Part shown: piece by piece, positions 13,190 through 64,000 of the stretch
How the letters are laid out: each line of letters opens with the position of its first letter
Position numbering within the stretch: the first letter of the stretch is position 1
Assembly (NCBI GenBank): GCA_001643675.2
Contig: LSRY02000027.1
Coordinates: 1,248,185-1,312,184, forward strand
Direction of reading: 5' to 3'
Length of the DNA stretch: 64,000 nt
DNA from: Monocercomonoides exilis PA203
Taxonomy: Eukaryota; Protista; Preaxostyla
Notes under the pieces: generated by a model
Databases searched by the model: none
The model's input: the letters and a program-made list of their open reading frames with translations, nothing else
What the model was told of the DNA's origin: nothing
Position numbers and translations under genes: made by a program

Positions 13190-16100
13190 ATGTCATTTTC
13201 CAATCCAAATTCAACATTATCATCTCGATGCAGCATTTTATGGAAAGAAATACAACGCATCGGTGGAGATGACGTTGATTCTTTGCTTGCCTATTTGTTT
13301 TACAATTATAGGCAATCGTCTTCTGTGATTAATGATTTACTGAAATCCTTGAATGGTATAGACTTCAAAATTTTTTGATTGTGAATAACTTATATTAATA
13401 TTTAATAATATTTATTTATTAATTTAACTTATTTTTTTGTTATTATGAAAACTTAGAATATTACGAAATACTTCTGAAAGATCTCTCAGTTGTGTACAAG
13501 CATGCACAATTGCACACGCAAACGATGATCCTACAAGCACTGACGCGCAACGCATCATTATCTGAGCTTCTGGACTATGGATTTGATATCACAGAAGGAA
13601 AATATAATTACGCCAAACAAACTCTCACAAGAAACCAAGGATTTTTAATTCCAGCACAATTGCCTCACCCACCATCATGCAAAAGTGGTTTGTATAAAAT
13701 TTTACAATAATTTCTTTTTTTTCTTCTTTAATATTTATTCATTATTTTTTTATTTTGTTTAGGTCTTAATGAACAAGATTGGGAAAAGGGCAACAATTGG
13801 ATGTTGGCCCATTCCACAGAAGCATCAACGTCATTGCAATCAGCCAAGAAAAAACCAAAAAGGGTTCCTGAATACGCGCAGTTCATAGATGAATCTGCAT
13901 GGGATGATATAATTATTACAGAAAAAAATAATTCAAGCAATGAACAATATTCTCCATCAAAAAAATCTCATCAACAAAATAAAAAATCAAATTCCATGTC
14001 AGAAAATAAATCCTCTTCATCAAAATCTTCTTCATCTCACGTGGTTAGTGATCCAATTAGCACACCACTTAGAGCTGAAAGAAGTTCAACAAAAATCAAA
14101 CAAAGAAATGCACTTCATCATCGTCATTCTTCTCCATCACCTATTCCAATTTATAAACTTTTCAAACAAAAAACTTCCATTTTATCTTCCTCATCTTCCT
14201 CTTCCTCTTCCTCTTCCTCTTCCTCTTCATCCAAAAAGCAACAAAAAGAAACAACAAACACTTCTTCCTTCAGCAACAATGATGTATGGGTTAGTGATCA
14301 ATTGCTTAATTATGTCACTTCTCCAACACTTATTCCTCCACAGGCATATCGAGATTTTCTGTCTTCATTTGCAAAAGACAGCAACACTTCTCTGTCTCCA
14401 CAAAAAACGCATTCAAATGAAAGTGATAATTCAAATCATGAAAGTCATTCGAATATCATTTCAAATAATAACACAATGGATCTTCATCCTTCAAATTGTT
14501 CTTTCTCTCCATCGACCTCTTCAAGCATCAAAGCCACTGCAATCGCCTCATCAAAAACTCAGAAAGGATTAAAAAACCTTGGAAACACTTGCTATCTTGC
14601 CTCTCTCCTTCAATGCATATCTTCAATCACTTCACAAAAACAATCAATTATTGAAACCATTTCATTAAAAAACAATTTATCTTCTCGAGTATTGAGTGTT
14701 TGTCAACAATTGGCAAAAGATGGAATGGCAGTGCGTTCATGGTCCCCATCGCTGATCAACAAATGGGAGACATTTTGCGAATACGGAAGCAGGCAACAAC
14801 AGAATGTGATAGAGTCATTTGAAAATCTTCATCAACTTCTGCAAAATGACAAGATAATTAAAAAGGACACCTTCAATCCAGTGCTCATCACTCATTTCAA
14901 ATGTCAAAAATGTCAAAAAGTTTCAAATCATTTTAATGAATCTTGTTGCAATGTTATCATAAATTCATCCTCTCCTCAAAAAGGTCTATCTTCTATCTTT
15001 TCAACTGAGATATTGAACGGAAAAAATGCTGTCTATTGCAACGATTGCAAAGAGAAATGCTGTGCTGCGAGATGGGAGGAAATGGTTGCATTTCCAGAGG
15101 TTCTAGCCCTCTGTCATGAATGCACTGGCACAACAAGCTCTGCACCTTCAAGAATACTTATGATTGAAACTGATCGTGCCAACAAGCGCACATTTATCAA
15201 AGGGTTTATAAACGAAAAAGAAACTCCGCTTCAATCAAAAAACAAAGAAATAGTAATCTATCATCTTGCTGGACAAATAATCTACAAACGCTTGGATCAG
15301 AGCAATGGCCACTTCATTGCTGTTGTGAAAAAAAAGAGTGATATTTGCAGTTGTTGGAGAATTTGCAACGATGCTGATGTCAATGATTTTGATAGTGACA
15401 ATTGGATAAAGTCCTGGAATAATCTATATGCCCAGGGTTTTACTCCTTGCCTAACATTCTACACAAAAGAAAAAACAAAACCGACATTTTCAACGCTTCA
15501 ATTTGGTGGTGCTTTTTCTTCTTCAAAAGCATCGAATATAAACACTTCAAATAACAGATCGTCTTCATCGTTATCATCAACATCACCTTCACCATCCTCA
15601 TCACCATCCTCATCCTCATCATCATCATCTCTTTCTTCTTCTTCGTCGTCGTTGTCGTCGTCTGTCACACCACCTCATTGTGCAACTTCCATTCCTCCAC
15701 TCTCTTCTTCAATTTCAACAAGTTATGGATTGGAAGCCTTAAAGGAAAGAAGAAAGAAAACGGGCATCTTTTCTCCCAATGAAAAGAGATTAATCTTCAA
15801 GCCCAAGACTAAATTATGGAAAGAGTTTTCAGAAGAAACGAATATCACAGTTTCTCTTTCCCATTTCTACAAACTCACCACCAATTTCTCCAAAGCGAAA
15901 AGACGAACGGATCTCTGCGGCATGTGTGAGAAGTTGGACTATCTCGAGAACAAACTTAAATCTTCTCAAAACAAAAATGGACTTTCTTCTGCCGAGTTTC
16001 ACACACTCAAACTTCTTCGTCAACATCGTCTTGTTGCAGAAATGCAACGAAAACATTATCAATCAACTGTCGACAATCTGAAAGAGGGAGAAGCAGCCTT

Positions 16101-17025
16101 CGTCTTCGACTTCAAAGAAAAATGGAAACTCCCCATCAGAAAGAACCAACTTCAACAAGAATTCTTCAATTATCAACAGGTTTCTCAATTCACAATCATC
16201 TCTCTTCAAAAAATAAATAATCAACAAATAAAAAGAACTTTCAACTTCTTCTCTGACTGCCTTTCAAATGATCACAGATTTGTTATTGAGTGTCTGGAAT
16301 CTGTGATCAAAAGGCACTTCTTCTCAGACACTCACACTTTTAAGTTCTTCTGCGATTCGGGTCCTCATAACCGAAATCGCTTCCTTCTTCACTTCATCCT
16401 TTCAAAACAATCAAAACTTCTTAAAAAGAAAAATACTCAACTCAACTTCTTCGCTGAGCATCATGGAAAAAATATATGTGATAGTGAATTTGGTGCGCTA
16501 GTGAATGCAATCGACAACAATCTTTCGACAGAACACATCACCACACTTCATGACTTGATCAACTTCTTCGAAAACAATATGAACACTTCAACATCAGCTT
16601 CTTCAACTTCTCGATCAAACATTTTCTCAACATCATCATCAAACTCTTCACCATCTTCAACATCTGTCAATAAGTTTGAGCATGAGAGGTTCTTTGAAGA
16701 GTACGTACCATCTCAGCAAATTTCATGGCCATCATTGTCAGTTCCACACATGAAAGATTACTTGTATTTTGAGCGCAAGGGCTCATTTGTCTGTGCTTCA
16801 GCTGTTGGATATCTTCCTCAACGCTCTCTGGTTGCCCTCGAATCTTCGACAATGAAAGAAAAAGTCCAAAGATCAAGAAAGTCATTTCACTCTGATATCA
16901 CATCATCAAACTCTTCTCTTCTTTCTCAATCTTCTCAAGATCTTCTTTCAAGGAGATTTGAGCTTCTTCTTGACTCTTCTTCTATTTGTGAATCTCAAAA
17001 TTGTTCTTTTGGTGTCCCCTATTAA
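13190..17025 (+). CDS. Sola-like (Sola2-type motifs) DDD transposase with in-frame USP/C19 deubiquitinase domain; 3 exons 13190-13355, 13457-13687, 13763-17025 (~1219 aa)
   Basis: Both GT-AG introns are phase 1 and keep the frame. Transposase motifs: ILQAL..SLSELLDYGF, VSLSHFYK..KRRTDLCGMC..H, DFKEKW (D 16108), SDCLSNDH, FFCDSGPHNRN (D 16354), NFFAEHHGKNICDSEFG (D 16480). USP ~14560-15470: GLKNLGNTCY (Cys 14590), CQKC/CNDC, GHF (His 15310), CNDADV. Confidence 0.85.
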
Positions 17026-17031
17026 GAAACT

Positions 17032-17166
17032 AGTTGTTGTGTATGCTTAGCTGGCACTCTATCGGAAGGGTGCTGGACATGACTGTTCGTATAAGATACT
17101 ACAGCCTTCTGGCTGCAATATCCGGACCTGGATACGACGAACAGCCTCCCAGGTGCTCAACAGTTA
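17032..17166 (+). ncRNA. Putative structured RNA element, copy 1 (unknown family), immediately 3' of the transposase stop
   Basis: Closing stem GTTGTTG-T-GTAT/GTGC-T-CAACAGT, then GCTTA, hairpin GGCACTC/GGGTGCT, GGACAT, stem CTGTTCGT/ACGAACAG, an inner hairpin, and a pseudoknot-like ACCTGG/CCAGGT pairing. Homologous to 55894-56052. Strand is inferred from G-U pairs and is not certain. Confidence 0.55.
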
Positions 17167-17821
17167 GAATCCGATTGTTTTCTTGTGCTTTTTGTCCCTA
17201 TAATGTCCCTATTATTTAATTGGTTATTGTCCCTATTATTTTTGTATATATTGAGATTCATTAATAGAGAGAGTTGTGAGGGAATTCATTGATCTTTGGG
17301 TAAGGTTTTTGGAAGGGAGAGTTGACGAGAGTGTGAAATGTTGTTTTATCATTGTGTCTGTCTTTTTTCTTTGTTGGATTTGATCTTTTTGAGTCAAAGT
17401 GAGAGAAATATCAGAAAGGGGAGAGTGGATGGAAAACAGAGGGAAAATAGACAAGTTAGTTTTTGAACTTTTTATATAAGTATTCTTTTTTGTTTGGAAT
17501 TGTCTTTGATACCACGTATTTGTTGAAATAGTGCTATTTCTTCTTATATTTTTCATTGTTCAAAATTGTTGATATTTAGTTGATATTTGGTGATTGTTTT
17601 GAGATTATGTGATAGAATTATGTTTTTTTGAAAGTTATTGAATCTGATTTGAAATATTCTAATTGTTTTCTATTTTTTATCAATGATTAATATCGTGAAG
17701 TTCTATTTATTTATTTATTTATGTAATTTTGATTGGTGAACGATTGATTATTTTTTTCATTTCATCAAAATTTCAATTCACAATAAATATCCAGCTTGTC
17801 TTAAATGAAAATTACAATTAA

Positions 17822-18320
17822 AAACAAAAATGTGAAAATGTACTCACTAGCAAAATAAATATTTAAAAGTGTGTTTTACATTGCATTTATTAATTTCACA
17901 ATAACATAAAAATTTTTTTTGTTTGAACAAAAAACCCCAAAGCTAAATTCAACAAAAAATAATGTATCAACTCATGATCATAGAACAGATTCCAACACCT
18001 GCTTTTTTTGCTACTAATAGTTTATTTACATAATAGTCAATCGTTCCGAACAAAAAAATTTGCGTCTTAGAATCTGCATCTTTGGATCAAAAATGTTACC
18101 ATAATAAAAGTGAAAATTTCGGAAAACTTGAATGCATTCATTTTGAATTTGTTGATTGCTGCCTTATCATCACAGCTAAAAGAAGCACAAGGAAATGATA
18201 GTCATTTTCGGAAGCAGCAAAGAAAAGAGGCAGTCATGCAGATAATTTATCAATATCAACCGAATAAAAGAAAGATAGTTCACACTTTAAGAAATGCGTC
18301 AAGCATGATTCTTCTTTTTC

Positions 18321-49255: not shown

Positions 49256-52200
49256 TGATCGAAAAGATCAAATAAAACATTTGGGGCAAAATTTTTTCAT
49301 TTATAAGAAAAACTATGTTTTGTTCCAAACTTATTCTGCAATTATATCACAATGTTTATAACATTTATAAACAAAAAGAGAAATTAAGAGTTGTTCCATA
49401 ATATATATATTTTTTGAGTTTTGTGAACAAATGCTGTTTTTGTGGAAATATCCGGAGAATATCGTGGAAAGTTTGACTTTGATAACAGATTTTATTAAAA
49501 AAAAAATATAATGAATAGGTATAGAACTTATATAGAATTGCCAATACTGCTCATGAAGATATGATATTATTCGAGATAATATGCACATAATAGCTGTAAT
49601 TGAAAAAGAAATAGTTTCTCATTCAAAAAGAAAATTGAAGTTGAAGAAGATTTTAAAGTGGAAATAGGTATTGCATTGTTCAAAAAGAGAAAAGAAGAAG
49701 AATATGTTTTCGTGAGTATCTCTGTTTCAAAATCATATATATAATGTTCTATTATACCTTCAACAAACACTTCGAAAAGTGTTGATGTGTGTTGGAGACA
49801 ACAGCGGACTGAAGATTGAAACAGTGAGGATATACATTTGATGACCATTGCAAGCCCTTTTGCACACTTTCTTCATAAGATTAATACCTAGAGATGTGAT
49901 GCCTTTCAACATGTGAATGCCACAATCAAAAAGAAGAAAGATCTCGTTTCAAACAACTCTCATTGCTTGGTATTTTTCTCTTTTACCAATAATTTTCTTA
50001 ACACCTCAAACCTTGGATTAACATTAGGAGGGTCTGGAAGAGAGGCTTCTCTATCCGCTGCCTGTTTTATTGGTGCTTTTCAGTCTCAGTCCAAAAATGA
50101 GTGAAATTCCGGGCGCCACAAAGCTTCAAGCTTTTATCTGTGAGGAAAAGCGATACTGGGTTATGTGATGAATCAAAAGGCAGATATCGAGGAGATGGGG
50201 TATTTGGCCTTTCACCTGGTGAATGAGCGAGCTATGTTTCAAGTGAGGAAAAACAAAGAGATACTCTTATTAATTCTGAAGGCAAAGTGAGCACATGGAA
50301 TAAACCAAGGAATGAATAAGACGGGCTAAAAGGAGACAGACACATTCACAACAGCATGAATTTTTTGATCACATTTTTGATCCAGTCATGAAGATCAAGA
50401 TCACAAATGTGGTTGCCTATTCGCTCACTGCACTACCAATCTGCAAGATGTTATTTGATGCAGCGCATTCTTTTCTTCTCTCAATGTCGTCTAGTGGAAA
50501 GCTCCTCTGATACGACAAGCAAGCAGATCAAAGAAGACGAGCTACTGCTGAGCGATCTAGCATCAATTATAGATTGCTGCCTATCGCTCAATCCATGCAA
50601 GCTCATGAAAACTGAAGAGGTAGTATTCCACGCGTTTTGGTAAAAAATAGCAAAGCAACAGTCAACTCAGCAGAAGACTGCAAAAAAGACGGCTTACGGA
50701 TCAGAATATTCTTCGACCTCACACAGTTTGTCTTCTTTTTTGTCTTGTTATTATCTTCATCTTATTCCTGTTCCTCTTTTTCTTCGAATTTTGCAAATTT
50801 ATCAAATTCTTGATTATTTCTCGAGCATTCAGCTAGCAACAGACTTTGCTTCTCCTCTTCAATACCACAACAATCGTCGCTTTCTTTTTCCTCCCATTCC
50901 TTCTCCATTATATTCCAATATTCCATTTCATTATTTCTCGAATCTTTGTCTTATTGACCGTCCAATCGAATGTTTCTGGCAATGGATGTTTATTCTATAG
51001 TTATCACTTCAATGATCTATGTGGAAATAATGCAATATTCGAACAGATCATGTTACGACTCTGTTATGAAGAAATGGATTATTTTCACATTGGAAGTGAA
51101 AAGGCACCTCAAACAAACAGTGGGAGAAAGAAACAGAACTGTAAATGAAACGAACACTTGTGATAAAAGTATTGTTGATAGTAACAGAAAGAGAACAAAA
51201 GATAAAATCAAAAAGGTTAACAACACATATCCAGGTCTTCATTCTTCATCTTCAATTATCTCTCTAACCACTTGCAGAAGAGGCGCGCTTTGTGCAGCTT
51301 ATCTTGAAAAGGCCAACCTATTAACGATAGCTGGATTTGTTGTATCAAATCTTCCATCTGCCCTGAACAAATTCCATTTGATTGGAGAGCTGAAGCAGTA
51401 CAGCGGGAAGAGAATGAGGATTATCTTGTTCCTTTTTTTTTCGACAGAATAAAAAAAATAAAAGACTATCGTTCGCAGCAGCTTGTGCAGAAGATCTTAT
51501 AATGTAACAGAGCATCGCAGTTGTTCATCGCTTCAATTACACTATTCAAACTCTTTCGTTTTTTATTTTCAAAAAATCAAATCTGAATCTGAAGGTTTTC
51601 AAATACTGGATTGTTGTTTTAAATTTTGAATGTGCTTTTCTATAAATTTTGATTGAAAATTTTTTGTTTACGAATTTCGTTCTCCTATGAGTGAATAAGT
51701 ATTGTTTTCCAAATTTTGCACATTTTGTTTCAAACTTTTCAGATTGACATTTATGAATAAATAACTGTACTGAAAGAGGAAATAAAAATTTTTTAAGCAT
51801 TAAAATAAGTGAAAGTTAATTCAGTTTTCAAAGATGAATGAGGTGAAAAGACAAAATTTCTTTGAATAAAAAAGTGATATTTGCAACAAAAAAAAAATAA
51901 ACAGAAAAAATTTCAACATTAATGAACAAAAAACATTTATCTCTTGCCGATACGTGCAATGGTTCAATCCTTCATAATCCTCATGTGCTTTTTCTATCTT
52001 TTCACATTACTTCATTTTTATTGATTTTGAAAAAGCTTCATTGTTTCACAGTCTCGTTGTTTGTGTTTCCTTTCACTCATCTTGAAGTTGTCAAACAGAA
52101 CCAAAACAATCAAACTTTGTTCCATTCCCCTATGTTGATTGTATCAATTTATCTGAACACAGATCGAAAAAATTTCCTTTTTCCAATGCTTCAATTCCTC

Positions 52201-52787
52201 CATTTTCCCGTTCTTCCAGTTCGAATCTTGAATTTCTCACGAAATGAATCCGTTCACAATCACTTATTCCAATTTTTAATCGTCGAATTTGTTTTTAATC
52301 AAAAACTGAAAAGCAGACTGATTCATAAGTTTTGACGTTGTTTAAAATCTATAATATAGACTGATATCTTATTAATCATCCATGGAAAGTTCTTGTCCAA
52401 TTTTCAATTTTTGAATGAACATAAACAATAAAACACTCATTTATTGCAAAACAAAAAATCACACATCAAATTGTTAAATGTTGCACAACCCAAGTCAAGT
52501 TATTAACTCTTCATTTGAAGCTTCAAAATGTTTCTCCTTGTTCATCATTGCTTTTTTTTAAAGATTAGCAAATTGAAAATGATTGTTCAGTTATATTTCA
52601 GAAAAACGAAAAACAAAACGCATTCGCATGTATCAAAGAGATAAATTTTGATATTTAATTTGTTCCTCGCAAATATTTCTTCTTGATTTATCAGTTGCGG
52701 TGTTTTATCAACATATTTCATTCTTTTTCATTTTGCCCTTAATTTATCCTTTTCACTACCATTACAAAAGAAAAAAGATCCGTTGAA

Positions 52788-55700
52788 ATGAATTGCTATT
52801 CTGACGCTCCGCGTTCGACAAAAAGTCGACATGCATCTCAAATAGATGAATATCTGTTTGAGCTATCTCTAAAGGACCCAAAAGGGTGCTTATTTTCTTT
52901 CTTGTTTCACAGCAATAAAGGAAAACCCTTTCTTTCAGTGCTCGAGGCTCATTTTGATGGTTTGTCCTCTCTTTATTTAAACAAATATCTTATTGCTTTG
53001 TGATGTTTTCATGTCTATTTTGTTTAAATTTTTAATAAATAATTGCATTTGGGGATGCGATTCTCTCTTTAGTGTTGTTTTTTGTTTGATTCTTTTTGTT
53101 GCTATTTTTTTATTGTGAAAACTTCATGAGAAATTTTCGTTGATTAATAAGAAATTATTTTCATTATTTATTTCTTGTTATTAATCATCTTGATTATTTT
53201 TTTTTCATTTATTATTATACATTTTATTTTGTTATCGTATGAAAGTCATAAATGAAAATGACCTTTCAATGTTTGTTTGCTTTTTGAAGAACACTTCTTG
53301 AATGTTGTTTGAGAAAAAGATGTTAATGTTATCATTTTTTTTTGAAAAATGTTCTTTTCTAATTTAAAAGATAGCACCCCAATGCAATTATTTGAAAAAA
53401 TTAACAAAATTCACAAAAAAACTTCACTAAAAAGAAAAGCTAAACAAAATCATAGCAAACTTGTCTCGATTATACTAAACACTTCAGAGAAACGACAAGG
53501 TTTCTCTTCTATCCTCGGTTTCTTCTGAGATTTCTTTGAAAGATCTCAGAAGATTTGGCTGGGACGTTTCCAATGGAGAATATTTCTACTCCAGAGAAAA
53601 GCAATCAAAAAACCAGAACCAAAAAAATTCAGTGACAAACAAAATGAACCGAGCAATGAAATGTTTGATAATAATATTTAAACTTTATTTATGTTCAATT
53701 TTCTATAGCAAACGAGCAGTTTCATAAAGCTGAAAACTGGCTCTTGAAAAATTGTTCTGCCAGTTGTTCCAATGGAAGACGATTAAAAAAGAGTTTGATT
53801 CAAATATTCCTATTCTCAAGCTTTATTCGAATGAAATGTTGATGAATTGAATAATAATTATTCTTTTCTATTAAGGAAAAAGTGAAATGCGCACAAAGTC
53901 CATCTTTTCTTCGGCTGGTCCTTTGCCTCCAGAAAACGAAGGAGATGATGTAATGCAACGATCTAATGTCGAAGCATGCTCGTCCATCGATGGATGTACA
54001 TCATCGGAGTATGGATCTTCAATTGAAACATCAAACGTTTCAATAAAACCCCCAGATGATCAGGGAAAAAAGCAAGAATTGAAAAAAACAAAAGATGAAG
54101 AAAAAGAAGAAAAAAAAATAAAAAAGATTATAATGAAAATTATACACACAAAATAAATAATCCAAGAAAACAAACATATCAAATTTCAATAGCAAATTTG
54201 ATTGACAAGGTCTCCAATGTGCTTGTCGAAGAAAATAGTTCAGAATCTGAAATGGAGGAATGTGAAAGAGAAAAAATGTTTTTTGGAAACAAGACAAATT
54301 CAAATAACAAAGAAATAGAAATATCTGAAGAAGAAAAAGAAAAAGAAGACAAAGAAAAAGTTGAAATAAAAATTAAAAGAAATGATAACGGTTGTATCAA
54401 TAACAGTATTTTTTCTTGTAATGAAAAAAAAATTATTGAGAAAACCAAGAAAGAATTATTTAATGAAATGAAGAAAGAAGTAGAAGTCAAGATGTCATAT
54501 TCGACATTTTGCAAGAAAACAAAAAATTTTATAAAATCAAAGAAAAGGACTGATTTATGTGAAATCTGTGAAAGAGGAAAATATCTAGAAAAGAAAAAAT
54601 TAGAAACGGAAAGAAACGAAAAAGAAATAGGCCAAAAAGAAAATGATGAATTGAATTTAATAATTCAGCATAAAAAAATGGCCCAACATCAAAGAAATTA
54701 TTTTTATGAAAAGAAAGAAAAGCTGAAAAAAGATGAAGTGATTATTATCATGGATTTTAAAGAAAATTGGTGTTTGCCAATTTCCAATAACGAAACGGGA
54801 AGATCTTTCTTCAATAAAAAAACAAATTTCACATTAATGTTTTGTTGTTTATTATCTTGATTGTTTTGGAGCTTTACAAAAATGTTGTTTCAATTTTTTT
54901 TCAGAAATTTTATCTCATGATTATCTTTTTGTTTTGGAGTGTTTGAATAAGTTATTACGTTTCGATATTTTTTCCAATATTTATTCTTTCCATTTTTTCT
55001 GTGATAATGGTCCTCATTTTCGTAATTCACAAATTTTTCATTCATCGTTTTCTCCTAATTCTTTGTTGTTCTTTAATAAACACTGCTCACTTTCATTCTT
55101 TGCCGAACACCATGGAAAGAATGATTGTGACAGTGAATTTGGTTATTTAACACAATTATTGAACAATAATCTAGGAGATCGTACTTTAAATAATGTGTTC
55201 GATCTCATAGATTTTTTTTGTTCACAGTGTAATTCTTATCTTTTTGGTTCTCATGATTCAAATTCTCCAATTTTTGTTTCTTCTTTTATATCTGATATAT
55301 CTAATAATTTATTAGGGCGAATGAATGAAGTTTCAGATTCTAGCGAGCAGAAAGAAAAACAGAACAAGACAAAGCACTTCTTTTTGATGTTTGATCTTTA
55401 ATTTTTATTTTTTTTTCTAATGATTTTAATTGAACTTTTTTCTAAAATGTTTTCTTTTTCATTTTCTAGGCATGAAGAGTTACCGAATAAATGTTGGAAT
55501 AAATTAATTATTAATGGAATGAAACAATACTTATTTTTCGAATCGAATGGCGACAAAGTGCTCGCATCTCCGCTGAGTTGCAACGAAAAGGTTTGTATGA
55601 AAGAGTTATCATTTAAAATAGAAATGAATTTGGATGAGAAGAAAAGAAAAGTTTATAAAAGAGTAATTTAAACAAATAATGAAATAGAAGAAAATGAAAG

Positions 55701-55800
55701 TTTAAATATAAAGAAAAGGGTTATAAACGGACTTGAAAAAAGAATAGAGTTAATAAATAGTTTTTCCACAATTTATTTTTCAGAAATACTCAGAAACTGA
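52788..55800 (+). pseudogene. Sola-like DDD transposase pseudogene without the USP domain
   Basis: Motifs SLKDLRRFGWDVS, MSYSTFCK..KKRTDLCEICE, MDFKENW, FFCDNGPHFRN and FFAEHHGKNDCDSEFG. Frameshift and stop at ~54820-54837; probable introns after 52959 and at ~55389-55469. Confidence 0.85.
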
Positions 55801-55893
55801 CAGGTATGCTTTTTTTTTTAGAATTATTATGTTTTTAAATAATTATTTCATTAATTATTTTTTTTTTTTTTCAATCGTTGACTTTTTATTGAG

Positions 55894-56052
55894 AAAAAAT
55901 TGTTTATTCTTGCTTATCCGATGAAATTTGGTTCAATCCAGATTGAGGACAAGACTGAATCCATCCTGTTATTGCTTTAATTAAACGATTATTGCAATAA
56001 CTTGCAGGCTTTGGGTCCAGATTCAGTTTCCCAGGAGAATAAGCAATTTTTT
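55894..56052 (+). ncRNA. Putative structured RNA element, copy 2
   Basis: Closing stem TGTTTATTCTT/GAGAATAAGCA, then GCTTA, hairpin AATTTGG/CCAGATT, GGACAA, stem GACTGAATC/GATTCAGTT, hairpin GTTATTGC/GCAATAAC and TTTGGG/CCCAGG pairing. Followed by T tracts. Confidence 0.55.
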
Positions 56053-56061
56053 CACATTTTT

Positions 56062-56099
<38 letters not shown>

Positions 56100-56356
56100 T
56101 TTTTAATTTTTTTTAATTTTTTTTAACAAACAAACTTTTTGGAAATTATTAGAATTCTTTCATTTAAGAAAGGATTCAAACCGGAATTTTTCAGAAAAAT
56201 TATTGAATGTGGAAAAATATACAAAAATGTTGGGTGGAACAAAATTCTTAAAGCAAAAAATTTTGCCCCACTTTGAATAATAAATGGTGTGCATGTTTGG
56301 AACTTGATCATATTTCGTTAAAATTTTATGTTTTCAAAATACTTAGAATTGTTGTA

Positions 56357-56752
56357 CAGACATCGCATAAAATACCAGACATCGCACAAAATACCGGACA
56401 AGATCGATATCTCAATAACCACAAGAAGAAAAATTCTGTTAATTTTCCTCAAAATACATCTCATCAATACAAACTCAGTTGATAAACGAGTATTTCAAAA
56501 CAGCTTCATTTGTGCTCAGGAGAAATTTATATCGAAATCTCGGAGAAATAGGATTTTGTGTTTCTCCGAGATTTTAAAAATATTTTATTCTGAGCGCAAA
56601 TGAAGCTATTCATTAAGCCTCGTTTATCAAATGAGTTTGTATTGATGAGATGTATTTTGAGGAAAATTAACAGAATTTTTCTTCTTGTGGTTATTGAGAT
56701 ATCGATCTTGTCCGGTATTTTGTGCGATGTCCGGTATTTTATGCGATATCTG
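56357..56752. mobile_element. Tc1/mariner-pogo-type palindromic MITE with TA TSD
   Basis: ta|CAGACATCGCATAAAATACC...GGTATTTTATGCGATATCTG|ta. About 135 bp of near-perfect TIR, with imperfect symmetry continuing to the centre; 396 bp. Confidence 0.88.
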
Positions 56753-57415
56753 TATTTCGATTTTCAAATTAATTATTTTTGTTATTAAGAATTGTGGAAT
56801 CGTCATAAATAACCATTTTTGATAAATCAAAAATATCTTGTCAGACATTTTGTCATTTTTTCAATTTTCTCTTTTCATGTCACAGATGTATACTTTTCAT
56901 TTTTGATTTTCCGATGCTGATTTATTTAATAGTTTCTTTTAATCGAATTTTTTCTGTTTAGGAAAAATATTTCTTAAATGTCATGAAAGGAAAAGTGTGC
57001 ACTTGTTGAGAAAACTCTCCCACCCTTTCGCATTTCACAATAAGTGTAACTTTTTGATTCTTCTACTCGTTTTGTTTCACACCAGCCTCTGTGCACTTTG
57101 TTTTTTGCACAGTTCTTCTTTAATATTTTCTTTTTTTCATTATTTCAATTTTTTCTCACATCCACAATTTTAACATCAATTTGTTAGTGACAGAGCCCTT
57201 AACATAGATTCAACTCTTTTCACAAGAAGTGCAGTGGTTTTGCATGTTCTTTTTTGAATTATGACAGTAACCATAATAGAATATAACAATAATTTATTTG
57301 TTATGTTTGTTGTTTTCTAATTTTATTAAAGAACATTGTTTTAATTTTATTATTATAAATGTTCATATGTGATGTTTTTCCCCCCCGAACAACAAGAATT
57401 CTTTCATTTTTAAGC

Positions 57416-59393
57416 ATGTCAGAAGGAAAAAATCACAACATAACTGTTGTGGCAAGAGTTCGTCCTTTGTCAATGTTTGAAAAGCAAAAAAACGCGATTG
57501 AATGCACAAGAATTGCAAATGATAACAAAACAATAAGTATTTCCGTTTGATTTTTCATTTTGCAATTTTTTTAAATATTTGAATTTATTTTTGAAAAAAT
57601 TTTTTCGCTTAATCAGACAAAAACAGAAAATCATTGTTGGACATTTGATTATGCATTTGAAAAGTCATCGAAACAAAGTGATGTCTACTTCAGAATTGCA
57701 GAACCTTTGTTGAAAGATGCTCTTAACGGGATAAACGGAGCGATAATGGCTTTTGGACAAACAGCATCTGGAAAGACTTATACAATGATGGGTCCAAATA
57801 CATCAAATAGCGAAATGCATGGAGTTATTCCACGACTTGTTAAAGGAATTTTCCAAGAAATTGAGAATGCACCAACAACGGACATTTTTATAATCAGTTG
57901 TACTTTTGTGGAGATTTATCAGGAGCATGTTCAAGACCTTTTAAATCCTTCGAAGAAAAATTTAAGAATTTTGGAACGAACTAACGAAGGAGTTTGCATT
58001 GAAGGCGTGACTGAAGAAGTTATAGAGAATGAGGAGAATTTTTTTGAAGCAATAAATTATGGCAATCAATATCGTGCACTTGCCTGCACCACAATGAATG
58101 AGCGGTCATCTCGGTCGCATGCCATTTTGTCTGTCTCTGTCCAGAGGACAAGTGAAGTGAACAAGACAACGAAGCGGTCGACGTTCCATCTTGTCGATCT
58201 CGCCGGCTCTGAAAGAGACCTGTTCAGCGGCTCAGCGATCGACGAGAAGATTCTGGGGGAGTCCAAAAAGATCAACCAGTCCCTGCTGGCGCTGGGGAAC
58301 GTGATCAACACGCTGACCGAAGGGCGGGCGCATGTGCCGTACCGAGACTCGAAGCTGACGCGGCTGCTAGCCGAGGCGCTGGGAGGAAACTCGAAGACAA
58401 CGCTGGTCATCTGCGTGTCGTGTGCCTCTTCGGCAGCGGCCGAGACGACAGCCGCGCTGAACTTTGGGAGGCGGGCGAAGCAGGTGAAGAACTGGGTGCG
58501 GCGGAACACGGTGCTGTCGGTGGCGGAGTATCAGAGGAGGCTGGAGGCGGCGGCGGAGAGAGTGAGCGAGATGAGAAAGGAAATGGCAGTGCTAAGGGCG
58601 GATAATAGAATTTACAGGGGGATGTTTGAGAGGAAGAAAGAAGGGGAAGGAGAAGGGAAAAGAGAAAGAGAAGGAGAGGAAGATAAAGATTGTTTCAATG
58701 AGAAATTATTTAAAGAGGAAAGAGAAAAAGAAATGGCTATTGCTTTGAAGGAAATAAAAAGTTCTATTTGGAAGAAAGGAGCTAATTTTGATGAAGACGT
58801 TGAAGAAAAATCAATTTCATCAAAAAATGCCAGTTCTCCTTCTTTGAATTCTGTGTCTTCTTTGGAGCTTAATGAAAGAACACACATTTCATCTGCAACA
58901 TCTTTTCCTTCATCTTCTTTAAATTCCTTTTCTTTTTCTTCTTCTTCTTCCTCTTCTCCTTCTCCTTCTCCTTCTTCTCCTTCCTCTTTCTCTTTCTCTC
59001 TCACCTCTTCATTCCCCACTCCTTCTTTGTGTCTTCCTCTGCTTCCTTCTTATTCGATTCCCCCAAAACCAGCCGATTTCTCTGAGCGTTCTTTGAACGA
59101 GCAGAACATCTGGCTCAATCAGCAGCTGGCTATCGCCGAGAACAAACTGGCTTCACAAAGAAATCAGTCTCAGGTTGAAGGAAAATTATTTATTTTCAGT
59201 TTTTTGTTTAATTTTATTATAATTTTTTTATTGTATTTTTTTGATGTTTAATTGAAATTTTACATTTTTTTTTCTTTTTCTTTTCTTTTCTTTACTTTTC
59301 TTTTCTTTTCTTTTCTTTTCTTTTCTTTTCTTTTCTTTTCTTTTCTTTTTTTTACTCAAAATTTAACTTTGTTTATGATATTATATTTATTTT

Positions 59394-62787: not shown

Positions 62788-63185
62788 TTTCCTGTTGATT
62801 TATGAGGAGACTTGTTTCAAGTCATTCTTTAAATAAAAATATTGTTTTACTCAAAAGAATTTGGAGAAACATGTTTAGCAGAATGGAATTATTTCATTAC
62901 AAAAAGGTTTTTGAACAAGTGGAAAATTGAAGATTGGAGAGCTTCTTTATCTCTCTCTCTTGTTAATAATATTTTTGCTTTGCTTTTACTTTATTTTTCA
63001 TGCGCTCCTGAAATTTTCCGTTTTTTGAAATTTTTTCTGTTTAGTTTTTCACTATTGAAAAATCATTTTTCAGAAAAGCATTTTCTTAAAAATATCTTCT
63101 GGTGCTAAAACAATGAAACTGTTGAATAAATTAACAACTCGAAAATTTTTTTAAATTGTTTCATTGGCAATCCAATTGAAAAAAC

Positions 63186-64000
63186 GAAAAGAAAAGAAAA
63201 GAAAAGAAAAGGAAAGAAAAGAAAAGAAAAGAAAAGGAAAGGAAAGAAAAGGAAAGAAAGGAAAAGAAAGGAAAGAAAAGAAAAGGAAAGGAAAGGAAAG
63301 GAAAGGAAAGAAAAGGAAAGAAAAGAAAAGAAAAGAAAAGGAAAGGAAAGAAAAGGAAAGGAAAGGAAAGAAAAGGAAAGAAAGGAAAAGTAAGGAAAGG
63401 AAAGGAAAAGAAAGGAAAGGAAAGAAAAGGAAAGAAAAGAAAAGGAAAGGAAAGGAAAGGAAAGGAAAGGAAAGGAAAGGAAAGGAAAAAAAGGAAAGAA
63501 AAGGAAAGGAAAGGAAAGGAAAGGAAAGGAAAGGAAAGGAAAGGAAAGGAAAGGAAAGGAAAGGAAAGGAAAGGAAAGGAAAGGAAAGGAAAGGAAAGGA
63601 AAGGAAAGGAAAGGAAAGGAAAGGAAAGGAAAGGAAAGGAAAGAAAGGAAAGGAAAGAAAAGGAAAGGAAAGAAAAGGAAAGGAAAAGGAAAGGAAAGGA
63701 AAGGAAAGGAAAGGAAAAGAAAAGAAAAGGAAAGGAAAGGAAAGGAAAGGAAAGGAAAGGAAAGGAAAGAAAAGAAAAGGAAAGGAAAGGAAAGGAAAGG
63801 AAAGGAAAGAAAGGAAAGAAGAAAAAAGAAAAGGAAAGGAAAGGAAAGGAAAGGAAAAGGAAAGGAAAGGAAAAGAAAAAGGAAAGGAAAGAAAAGGAAA
63901 GGAAAGGAAAGGAAAGGAAAGGAAAGGAAAGGAAAGGAAAGAAAAGAAAAGGAAAGGAAAGGAAAGGAAAGGAAAGGAAAGGAAAGGAAAGGAAAGGAAA
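63186..64000 (+). repeat. (GGAAA)n/(GAAAA)n pentamer satellite running off the window end
   Basis: Direct reading; an almost pure purine strand. Confidence 0.97.

Follow-up and report, generated by a model that had tools for sequence, protein, structure and literature searches.

Two transposase genes in one stretch of the Monocercomonoides exilis genome are each followed by a compact structured island, which raises the question of whether these islands encode an RNA, on which strand, and what such an RNA would do for a cut-and-paste transposon. The stretch analyzed here (the window) spans 64,000 nt and is the end of contig C22 in the 82.3-Mb, 101-contig assembly of this protist, which lacks a mitochondrion. 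The contig end itself (63000–64000) is a long purine-only GGAAA-type repeat and not a telomere repeat.

Two Islands Carry One RNA Motif Behind Transposase Genes

An initial annotation had placed an unrecognized RNA motif 3′ of two Sola-like transposase genes, and both islands were confirmed on the + strand. Copy 1 (17030–17166) begins 5 nt past the TAA stop at 17023–17025; copy 2 (55900–56046) lies ~100 nt past the TGA at 55798–55800. The islands share the same order of parts, and every named motif and stem was found in each. A transposase gene does precede both copies, the one at copy 2 being broken by frameshifts. The features of the window are as follows (all on the + strand except the palindrome, which is unstranded).

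13190–17025: type-A transposase gene (UCH domain, E 4.7e-13; DUF7869 clusters; 110 genome matches)
15739–16860: transposase core with motifs TDLC..C, DFKE.W, CDSGPH.RN and FAEHHGKN.CDSEFG
17030–17175: RNA motif copy 1, type A, with the 3′ tail of a second pseudoknot (from fold and stem comparison)
17030–17044: P1 5′ strand, pairing with 17153–17166
17044–17049: conserved junction UGCUUA, candidate cleavage region, with an RNA contig end at 17049
17050–17077: P2 hairpin, whose loop AUCGGA (17061–17066) pairs with tail UCCGAU (17170–17175)
17081–17090 with 17137–17146: P3
17095–17122: P4 hairpin
17123–17136: near-invariant loop CGGACYUGGAUACG
17147–17153: near-invariant UCCCAGG, whose CCAGG would pair with loop YYUGG as the putative core pseudoknot
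17176–17755: conserved 3′ flank common to type-A copies (from copy comparison)
54198–55800: type-B transposase gene, frameshift-broken, 5′ limit provisional
55900–56046: RNA motif copy 2, type B, with P1 at 55900–55911/56035–56046
55912–55916: GCUUA
55917–55949: P2 with a canonical kink-turn (3-bp C stem, 3-nt bulge, tandem G-A/A-G)
55953–55961/56020–56028: P3
55968–56001: P4
56007–56018: loop region
56029–56035: UCCCAGG
56355–56754: long palindrome, 194-nt arms at 90% identity, 300 nt downstream of copy 2

The motif is not confined to these two loci. An exact-pattern search of the whole genome (GGACAWGACTG..CAG..TCCCAGG) returned 107 matches against 0 with a reversed control, ~97 of them type A, and a genome search with a model built from diverse copies returned 118 type-B/C copies at E < 1e-7; of our two models, R1 encodes structure for P1 alone and R2 for P3/P4 alone, which makes both partly sequence profiles that distant versions could escape. 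The two sets together give more than 200 copies of three types, well beyond the two on which the motif was originally proposed.

Copies range from 130 to 200 nt and share the order P1, UGCUYA, P2, CWA, P3, P4, a loop with YYUG, P3′, UCCCAGG, P1′. In type A, which includes copy 1, P2 is a plain hairpin and the loop reads CGGACYUGGAUACG; in type B, which includes copy 2, P2 contains a kink-turn; and in type C an additional hairpin separates GCUCA from P2. Almost no variation is seen in the loop YYUG or in the junctions UGCUYA and UCCCAGG. Of the motifs initially described as invariant, GGACAW-GACTG varies family-wide and sits in covarying stems.

Stems Covary on the Sense Strand

To quantify pairing, we counted stem pairs in 24 representatives, one per subfamily, with positions set by sequence anchors and a null in which strands were swapped between sequences. 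Pairs were kept far above this null in P1 (138/144 vs. 72.5), P3 (152/153 vs. 125.6), and P4 (102/102 vs. 70.3), although strand-swap permutations ignore relatedness and the effective number of sequences is ~11. Type A alone gave 59/70 pairs in P3 (40.7 expected) and 49/56 in P2 (36.1 expected; P = 0.0004). A register shift lowered P3 to 33–67 of its 153 pairs. Independently of the anchors, stem pairs took nine of the top ten places when all 3,579 column pairs of a plain MAFFT alignment were ranked by MI-APC, and RNAalifold recorded double changes at 20 of 25 pairs. Compensatory changes are many and of several types despite the ~11 effective sequences; the initial observation that stem sequences differ but still pair extends to strong covariation of P1–P4 in the larger alignment.

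The strand, initially left uncertain, is settled as +. G-U pairs number 27 and A-C oppositions 3, which identifies the + (mRNA) strand as the functional one; a cUUCGg loop occurs in 20 of 30 type-A copies, and the kink-turn of type B also reads on +. Fold z scores of the + strands were −2.2 (copy 1) and −3.8 (copy 2). Selection acts on this fold as RNA and on the sense strand, and the motif has descended together with a single branch of Sola2-like transposases.

Tertiary contacts differ in how they are supported. The proposed pseudoknot between YYUGG and CCAGG is compatible with all sequences, its first four pairs being formable in 24/24 representatives, but it lacks proof by covariation: CCAGG is almost invariant, its partner shows only one-sided C/U changes, and compensatory changes number zero. 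For this reason we infer the core pseudoknot from compatibility. RNAalifold favors a rival CCU/GGG pairing in types B and C; CCU is missing from type A, which leaves YYUGG/CCAGG as the sole pairing available to every type. A further pseudoknot, particular to type A, joins the P2 loop to the tail 3′ of P1. Loop–tail helices of 4–8 Watson–Crick pairs occur in five of seven type-A subfamilies with differing sequences (AUCGGA/UCCGAU, UGUGG/CCACA, AGUG/CACU). The kink-turn (C stem, 3-nt bulge, tandem G-A/A-G) was parsed in six type-B subfamilies and seen by eye in three more, and its C stem covaries (UCC/GGA, CCC/GGG, CUC/GAG, UCU/AGA); it is absent from types A and C and from the metagenome copy described below.

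The RNA Follows One Branch of Sola2-Like Transposases

The type-A gene consists of an intron-containing 5′ part, a USP/UCH protease domain, and a Sola2-like DDD transposase; its start codon (13190) is placed where similarity between copies begins, and its exons were examined one by one, not as a joined spliced model. The nearest language-model clusters of the DDD core bear DUF7869 (PF25273), and its catalytic motifs resemble what we take to be those of Sola2 transposases. Beyond this likeness in motifs and language-model neighbors, the genes described here differ from other Sola2-like DDD transposases in the USP domain fused in type A and in an RNA confined to one branch. No homologue of the transposase was found in the PDB, and Pfam assigned the gene neither a TnpB/Fanzor nuclease domain nor an extra RNA-binding domain. 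A second USP-like protease gene lies upstream of one type-A group in divergent orientation (L081:1–1146, minus strand). One type-B subfamily (L041 and L042, on contigs C18 and C17) has an intron with long expanded AT-rich microsatellite arrays and tandem peptide repeats in the N-terminal region.

Linkage between gene and RNA was strong. Among 18 loci picked by protein similarity alone, 15 bear the motif downstream, and most type-B matches sit 3′ of listed transposase matches. Thirteen motif matches had no listed protein match: seven have transposase coding sequence within 1 kb, two have ~200 nt of common flank, and four have neither and look like fragments. Such placement does not fit a SINE or MITE that stands apart from the transposase. 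In the protein tree, RNA-bearing proteins form one branch (support 95/93), and RNA types track protein subfamilies, with 38–45% protein identity between types; the type-C label of protein P0012 comes from its contig and divergence.

The branch extends outside M. exilis. In JGI metagenome sample 3300010163, a contig codes for a transposase of 39% identity, and the motif follows ~45 nt past its stop. P3 of this copy is wholly re-sequenced, and the copy scored 48.6 bits though outside the training set. Relatives at 27–35% identity (Blattamonas, Streblomastix, Smittium, and two metagenomes), judged on contigs long enough to show the motif, gave no match; the flanks of the three named genera and of an ENA contig were scanned with both models. 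A YYUGG/CCAGG spacing match in Streblomastix falls inside another gene and is due to chance. Searching viral contigs and 185,579 prokaryote genomes with the exact pattern gave no exact match. Protein-seeded scans returned nothing from viral contigs and, outside these, one marine contig, from which the motif is absent. Distant transposases keep the same core without the RNA, which argues that the RNA is not needed for transposition chemistry generally.

Other structured sequences follow some of these distant genes. Past the transposase stop of a marine metagenome locus (L090:2490–2620), short GC-rich hairpins stand in a row and constitute a different motif. In Smittium angustum (L096:2565–2690), a GC-rich structured island (z −2.5) lies right past the stop; its plan is loosely similar (a stem, an inner hairpin, a 13-nt loop with AGGA, and UCCU after the stem), and neither model matches it.

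The Motif Is Internal to the Element

The motif lies at least 600 nt inside conserved element sequence, and more than 2 kb inside in type A. Type-A copies share ~600 nt after the motif and then divide into groups that continue for kilobases, often with 400-bp palindromes; one group has 1.9 kb of further common sequence 3′ of the ~600 nt. Palindromes like that at 56355–56754 flank many type-A copies; the one in the window has no upstream partner within 51000–58000. One group has its gene-plus-RNA cassette bracketed by two 400-bp palindrome copies, in either orientation, within larger multicopy flanks (C8:602600–612300, comprising L085, L007, and L086; also on C24, C63, C87, and C91). Cassette-free alleles with one palindrome occur at C33:729580–732426, C17:510074–513141, and C80:917366–920358. 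The occurrence of both cassette-bearing and empty alleles points to palindrome-mediated recombination or to a composite element of larger size. The Sola2 superfamily is defined by short terminal inverted repeats and a 4-bp target duplication; here long palindromic inverted repeats flank some copies, but no limits of the mobile unit were located.

This internal position bears on the initial comparison with the omega RNA of TnpB and Fanzor. The two are alike as structured RNAs at the 3′ end of a transposon ORF, but the analogy did not survive: the motif is internal to the element, the sequence 3′ of it is conserved and not a variable guide, and no RuvC nuclease is present by Pfam.

The Fold Matches No Known RNA Class

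The initial annotation regarded the motif as unrecognized and proposed an Rfam scan, which bore this out. Rfam 15 at gathering threshold gave no match in the window, and at E up to 10 none for copy 1 or 13 diverse loci; weak miRNA-type matches fell mostly in the flanks. The literature we searched contained neither a description of the motif nor any catalytic or partner RNA assigned to a eukaryotic transposon of the cut-and-paste kind.

Individual ribozyme folds were compared directly. HDV-like ribozymes form a nested double pseudoknot (P1/P2/P3/P1.1/P4) with a catalytic C in J4/2. Those of retrotransposons resemble our motif as compact pseudoknotted RNAs in mobile elements; here, unlike there, P1 encloses the whole fold, and the RNA follows a DNA-transposase ORF instead of preceding a retroelement. 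A relaxed nested double-pseudoknot descriptor, run without a positive control, matched 1/14 representatives in sense and 0 in antisense, and the sole match has a 4-bp P2 and breaks the covarying P3. The hammerhead core (CUGANGA plus GAAA) was found in 0/14 on either strand. Twister is the closest in plan. In its type P1/P3 form, the loop of a distal hairpin reaches the 3′ strand of the loop next to P1 through a pseudoknot, the 5′ strand contains a U-A step, and peripheral helices can be dispensed with; the predicted fold of our motif shares all of these features. In twister, L4 makes one pseudoknot with L1 (T1) and another with L2 (T2) (PMC6154101). Our motif differs in its extra hairpin P2 and three-way junction, only a T1-like contact and no T2 is predicted, the conserved letters differ, and no Rfam twister match appeared at E up to 10; a twister assignment was rejected.

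The ENE/dENE elements of plant and fungal transposons offer a precedent for the setting. The transposase gene of the rice hAT element TWIFB1 is followed by dENEs (PMC13541005), so the initial remark that no eukaryotic DDE transposon is known to have an RNA of this kind was too strong. ENE/dENE and our motif are both structured RNAs on the mRNA strand, located after a DNA-transposase ORF; ours has no U-rich internal loop (its conserved loops are UGCUYA, CWA, YYUGG, and UCCCAGG), being instead a multijunction pseudoknot with conserved G/C-rich junctions. The setting thus has a precedent in dENEs; the fold has none.

Candidate Functions

Expression data come from one RNA run, assembled into contigs at depth 2–4, its strandedness not given. 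RNA contigs span 16673–17049. One of them stops exactly on the final A of UGCUUA (17049), and none covers 17050–18000. The bin depth of 0.33 equals 12 bases of the contig ending at 17049 alone; that contig has a depth of ~4, and its variant letters agree with real paralogues. The stop at 17049 is a hint of an RNA end, not proof, as library DNA or priming could mimic it. The host's poly(A) hexamers are AAUAAA and AAAUAA (PMC8767320). Neither occurs within 600 nt downstream in 23 of 30 type-A copies, a weak signal given the U-rich flank (shuffles match only ~25% of the time in 300 nt) and one not seen in types B and C.

We read the motif as a structured RNA that acts in cis at the 3′ end of the transposase mRNA, and our leading, still tentative, prediction is a self-cleaving ribozyme of a new class. 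The small conserved core of the motif (P1, UGCU..UA, the base of P2, CWA, P3, loop YYUG, and UCCCAGG) carries freely varying peripheral helices and subtype helpers, namely the type-B kink-turn and the type-A loop–tail pseudoknot. The YYUGG loop would dock on CCAGG, stack on P1, and set the unpaired UGCUUA strand against it, and the backbone would be cut in or just after UGCUUA. Such a cut could set or limit the transposase transcript ahead of the long downstream palindromes, and may thereby tune transposase output and avoid long dsRNA. Small nucleolytic ribozymes likewise combine a small invariant junction core with an interchangeable periphery and subtype tertiary helpers. Self-cleavage is favored by this unpaired core and dispensable covarying periphery, by the contig end at 17049 with none beyond, by the hexamer-poor flanks of type A, by the long palindromes downstream, and by distant transposases that do without the RNA. 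The twister-like plan, with a loop docking beside P1 and a U-A step, points the same way (PMC6154101). Against it, the motif matches no known ribozyme consensus, the RNA end is a single contig that random priming at the sole unpaired stretch of an intact fold would explain equally well, a cut 3′ of the ORF would take off the poly(A) tail and needs explaining, and the core pseudoknot shows no compensatory change and competes with CCU/GGG in types B and C.

The position directly behind the ORF, like that of the hAT dENEs (PMC13541005), also suits a noncatalytic stability, export, or decay-blocking element, ENE-like or similar to exonuclease-resistant RNA but with a new fold, and possibly acting through a host L7Ae/Snu13-type protein on the kink-turn. 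We consider this rather unlikely, as our second choice: the compact pseudoknot closed by P1, the type-B kink-turn, and RNA contigs gathered just upstream agree with it, but there is no U-rich internal loop, types A and C have no kink-turn, and no RNA contig lies in or past the motif. An RNA bound by the transposase or its USP partner, as a feedback regulator, cis-preference signal, or transposition scaffold, would account for the tight linkage (15/18 loci, one branch at 95/93, RNA types following protein subfamilies); physical inheritance alone predicts that linkage too, relatives without the RNA keep the same core, neither an extra RNA-binding domain nor a variable guide is present, and motif–flank complementarity does not exceed 10- to 11-nt AU-rich matches, all of which makes this third prediction improbable. 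The last-ranked readings are very unlikely. GCUYA resembles a branch point (GCUUAY) and YYCCCAG|G a 3′ splice site, which the fold could bring close to each other and so regulate a 3′UTR intron or spliceosomal 3′-end formation, and the host has 218 annotated 3′UTR introns (PMC8767320); yet host introns here end in long U tracts and UAG, P3 pairing takes up the motif pyrimidines, the would-be junction is bridged by P1, an RNA contig continues without splicing from the ORF to GCUUA, and no conserved upstream 5′ splice site was noticed. Slimmer still are the chances of a DNA-level hairpin or recombination signal, or of a readthrough signal: the type-A fold begins 5 nt past the stop and the element bears other palindromes, but the excess of G-U over A-C, the UUCG/GNRA loops, and the kink-turn point to RNA, the stop-to-motif gap varies from 5 to ~100 nt, and no downstream frame is conserved.

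On balance, we think it slightly more likely than not that a eukaryotic cut-and-paste DDE transposon here employs an RNA for its own life cycle, either as a ribozyme of a new class or as a partner bound by the transposase. The initial proposal of a transposon-encoded functional RNA of unrecognized class is well supported by covariation, strand asymmetry, linkage, and the Rfam result, apart from its omega-RNA analogy. About ten classes of self-cleaving ribozyme are known, and to our knowledge those in mobile elements all belong to retroelements. One paper counts nine classes (PMC6154101). The motif is a previously uncatalogued RNA class tied to one branch of eukaryotic cut-and-paste transposases, with a function that is predicted only. 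Its two likeliest functions, self-cleavage and 3′ stabilization, have precedents; a transposase partner RNA, if true, would be categorically new. Whatever the function, the strong covariation and transposase linkage reveal long-term selection on RNA structure in cut-and-paste elements, in a transcript of testable size (150 nt).

The three subtypes provide a compact natural alignment for structure work. At type-C loci such as L098, L102, L106, and L108, the P4 loop keeps a self-complementary GACCGGUC, a possible kissing or dimer contact, and a small palindromic hairpin (GUCGAC/GUCGGC) recurs ~60–90 nt downstream.
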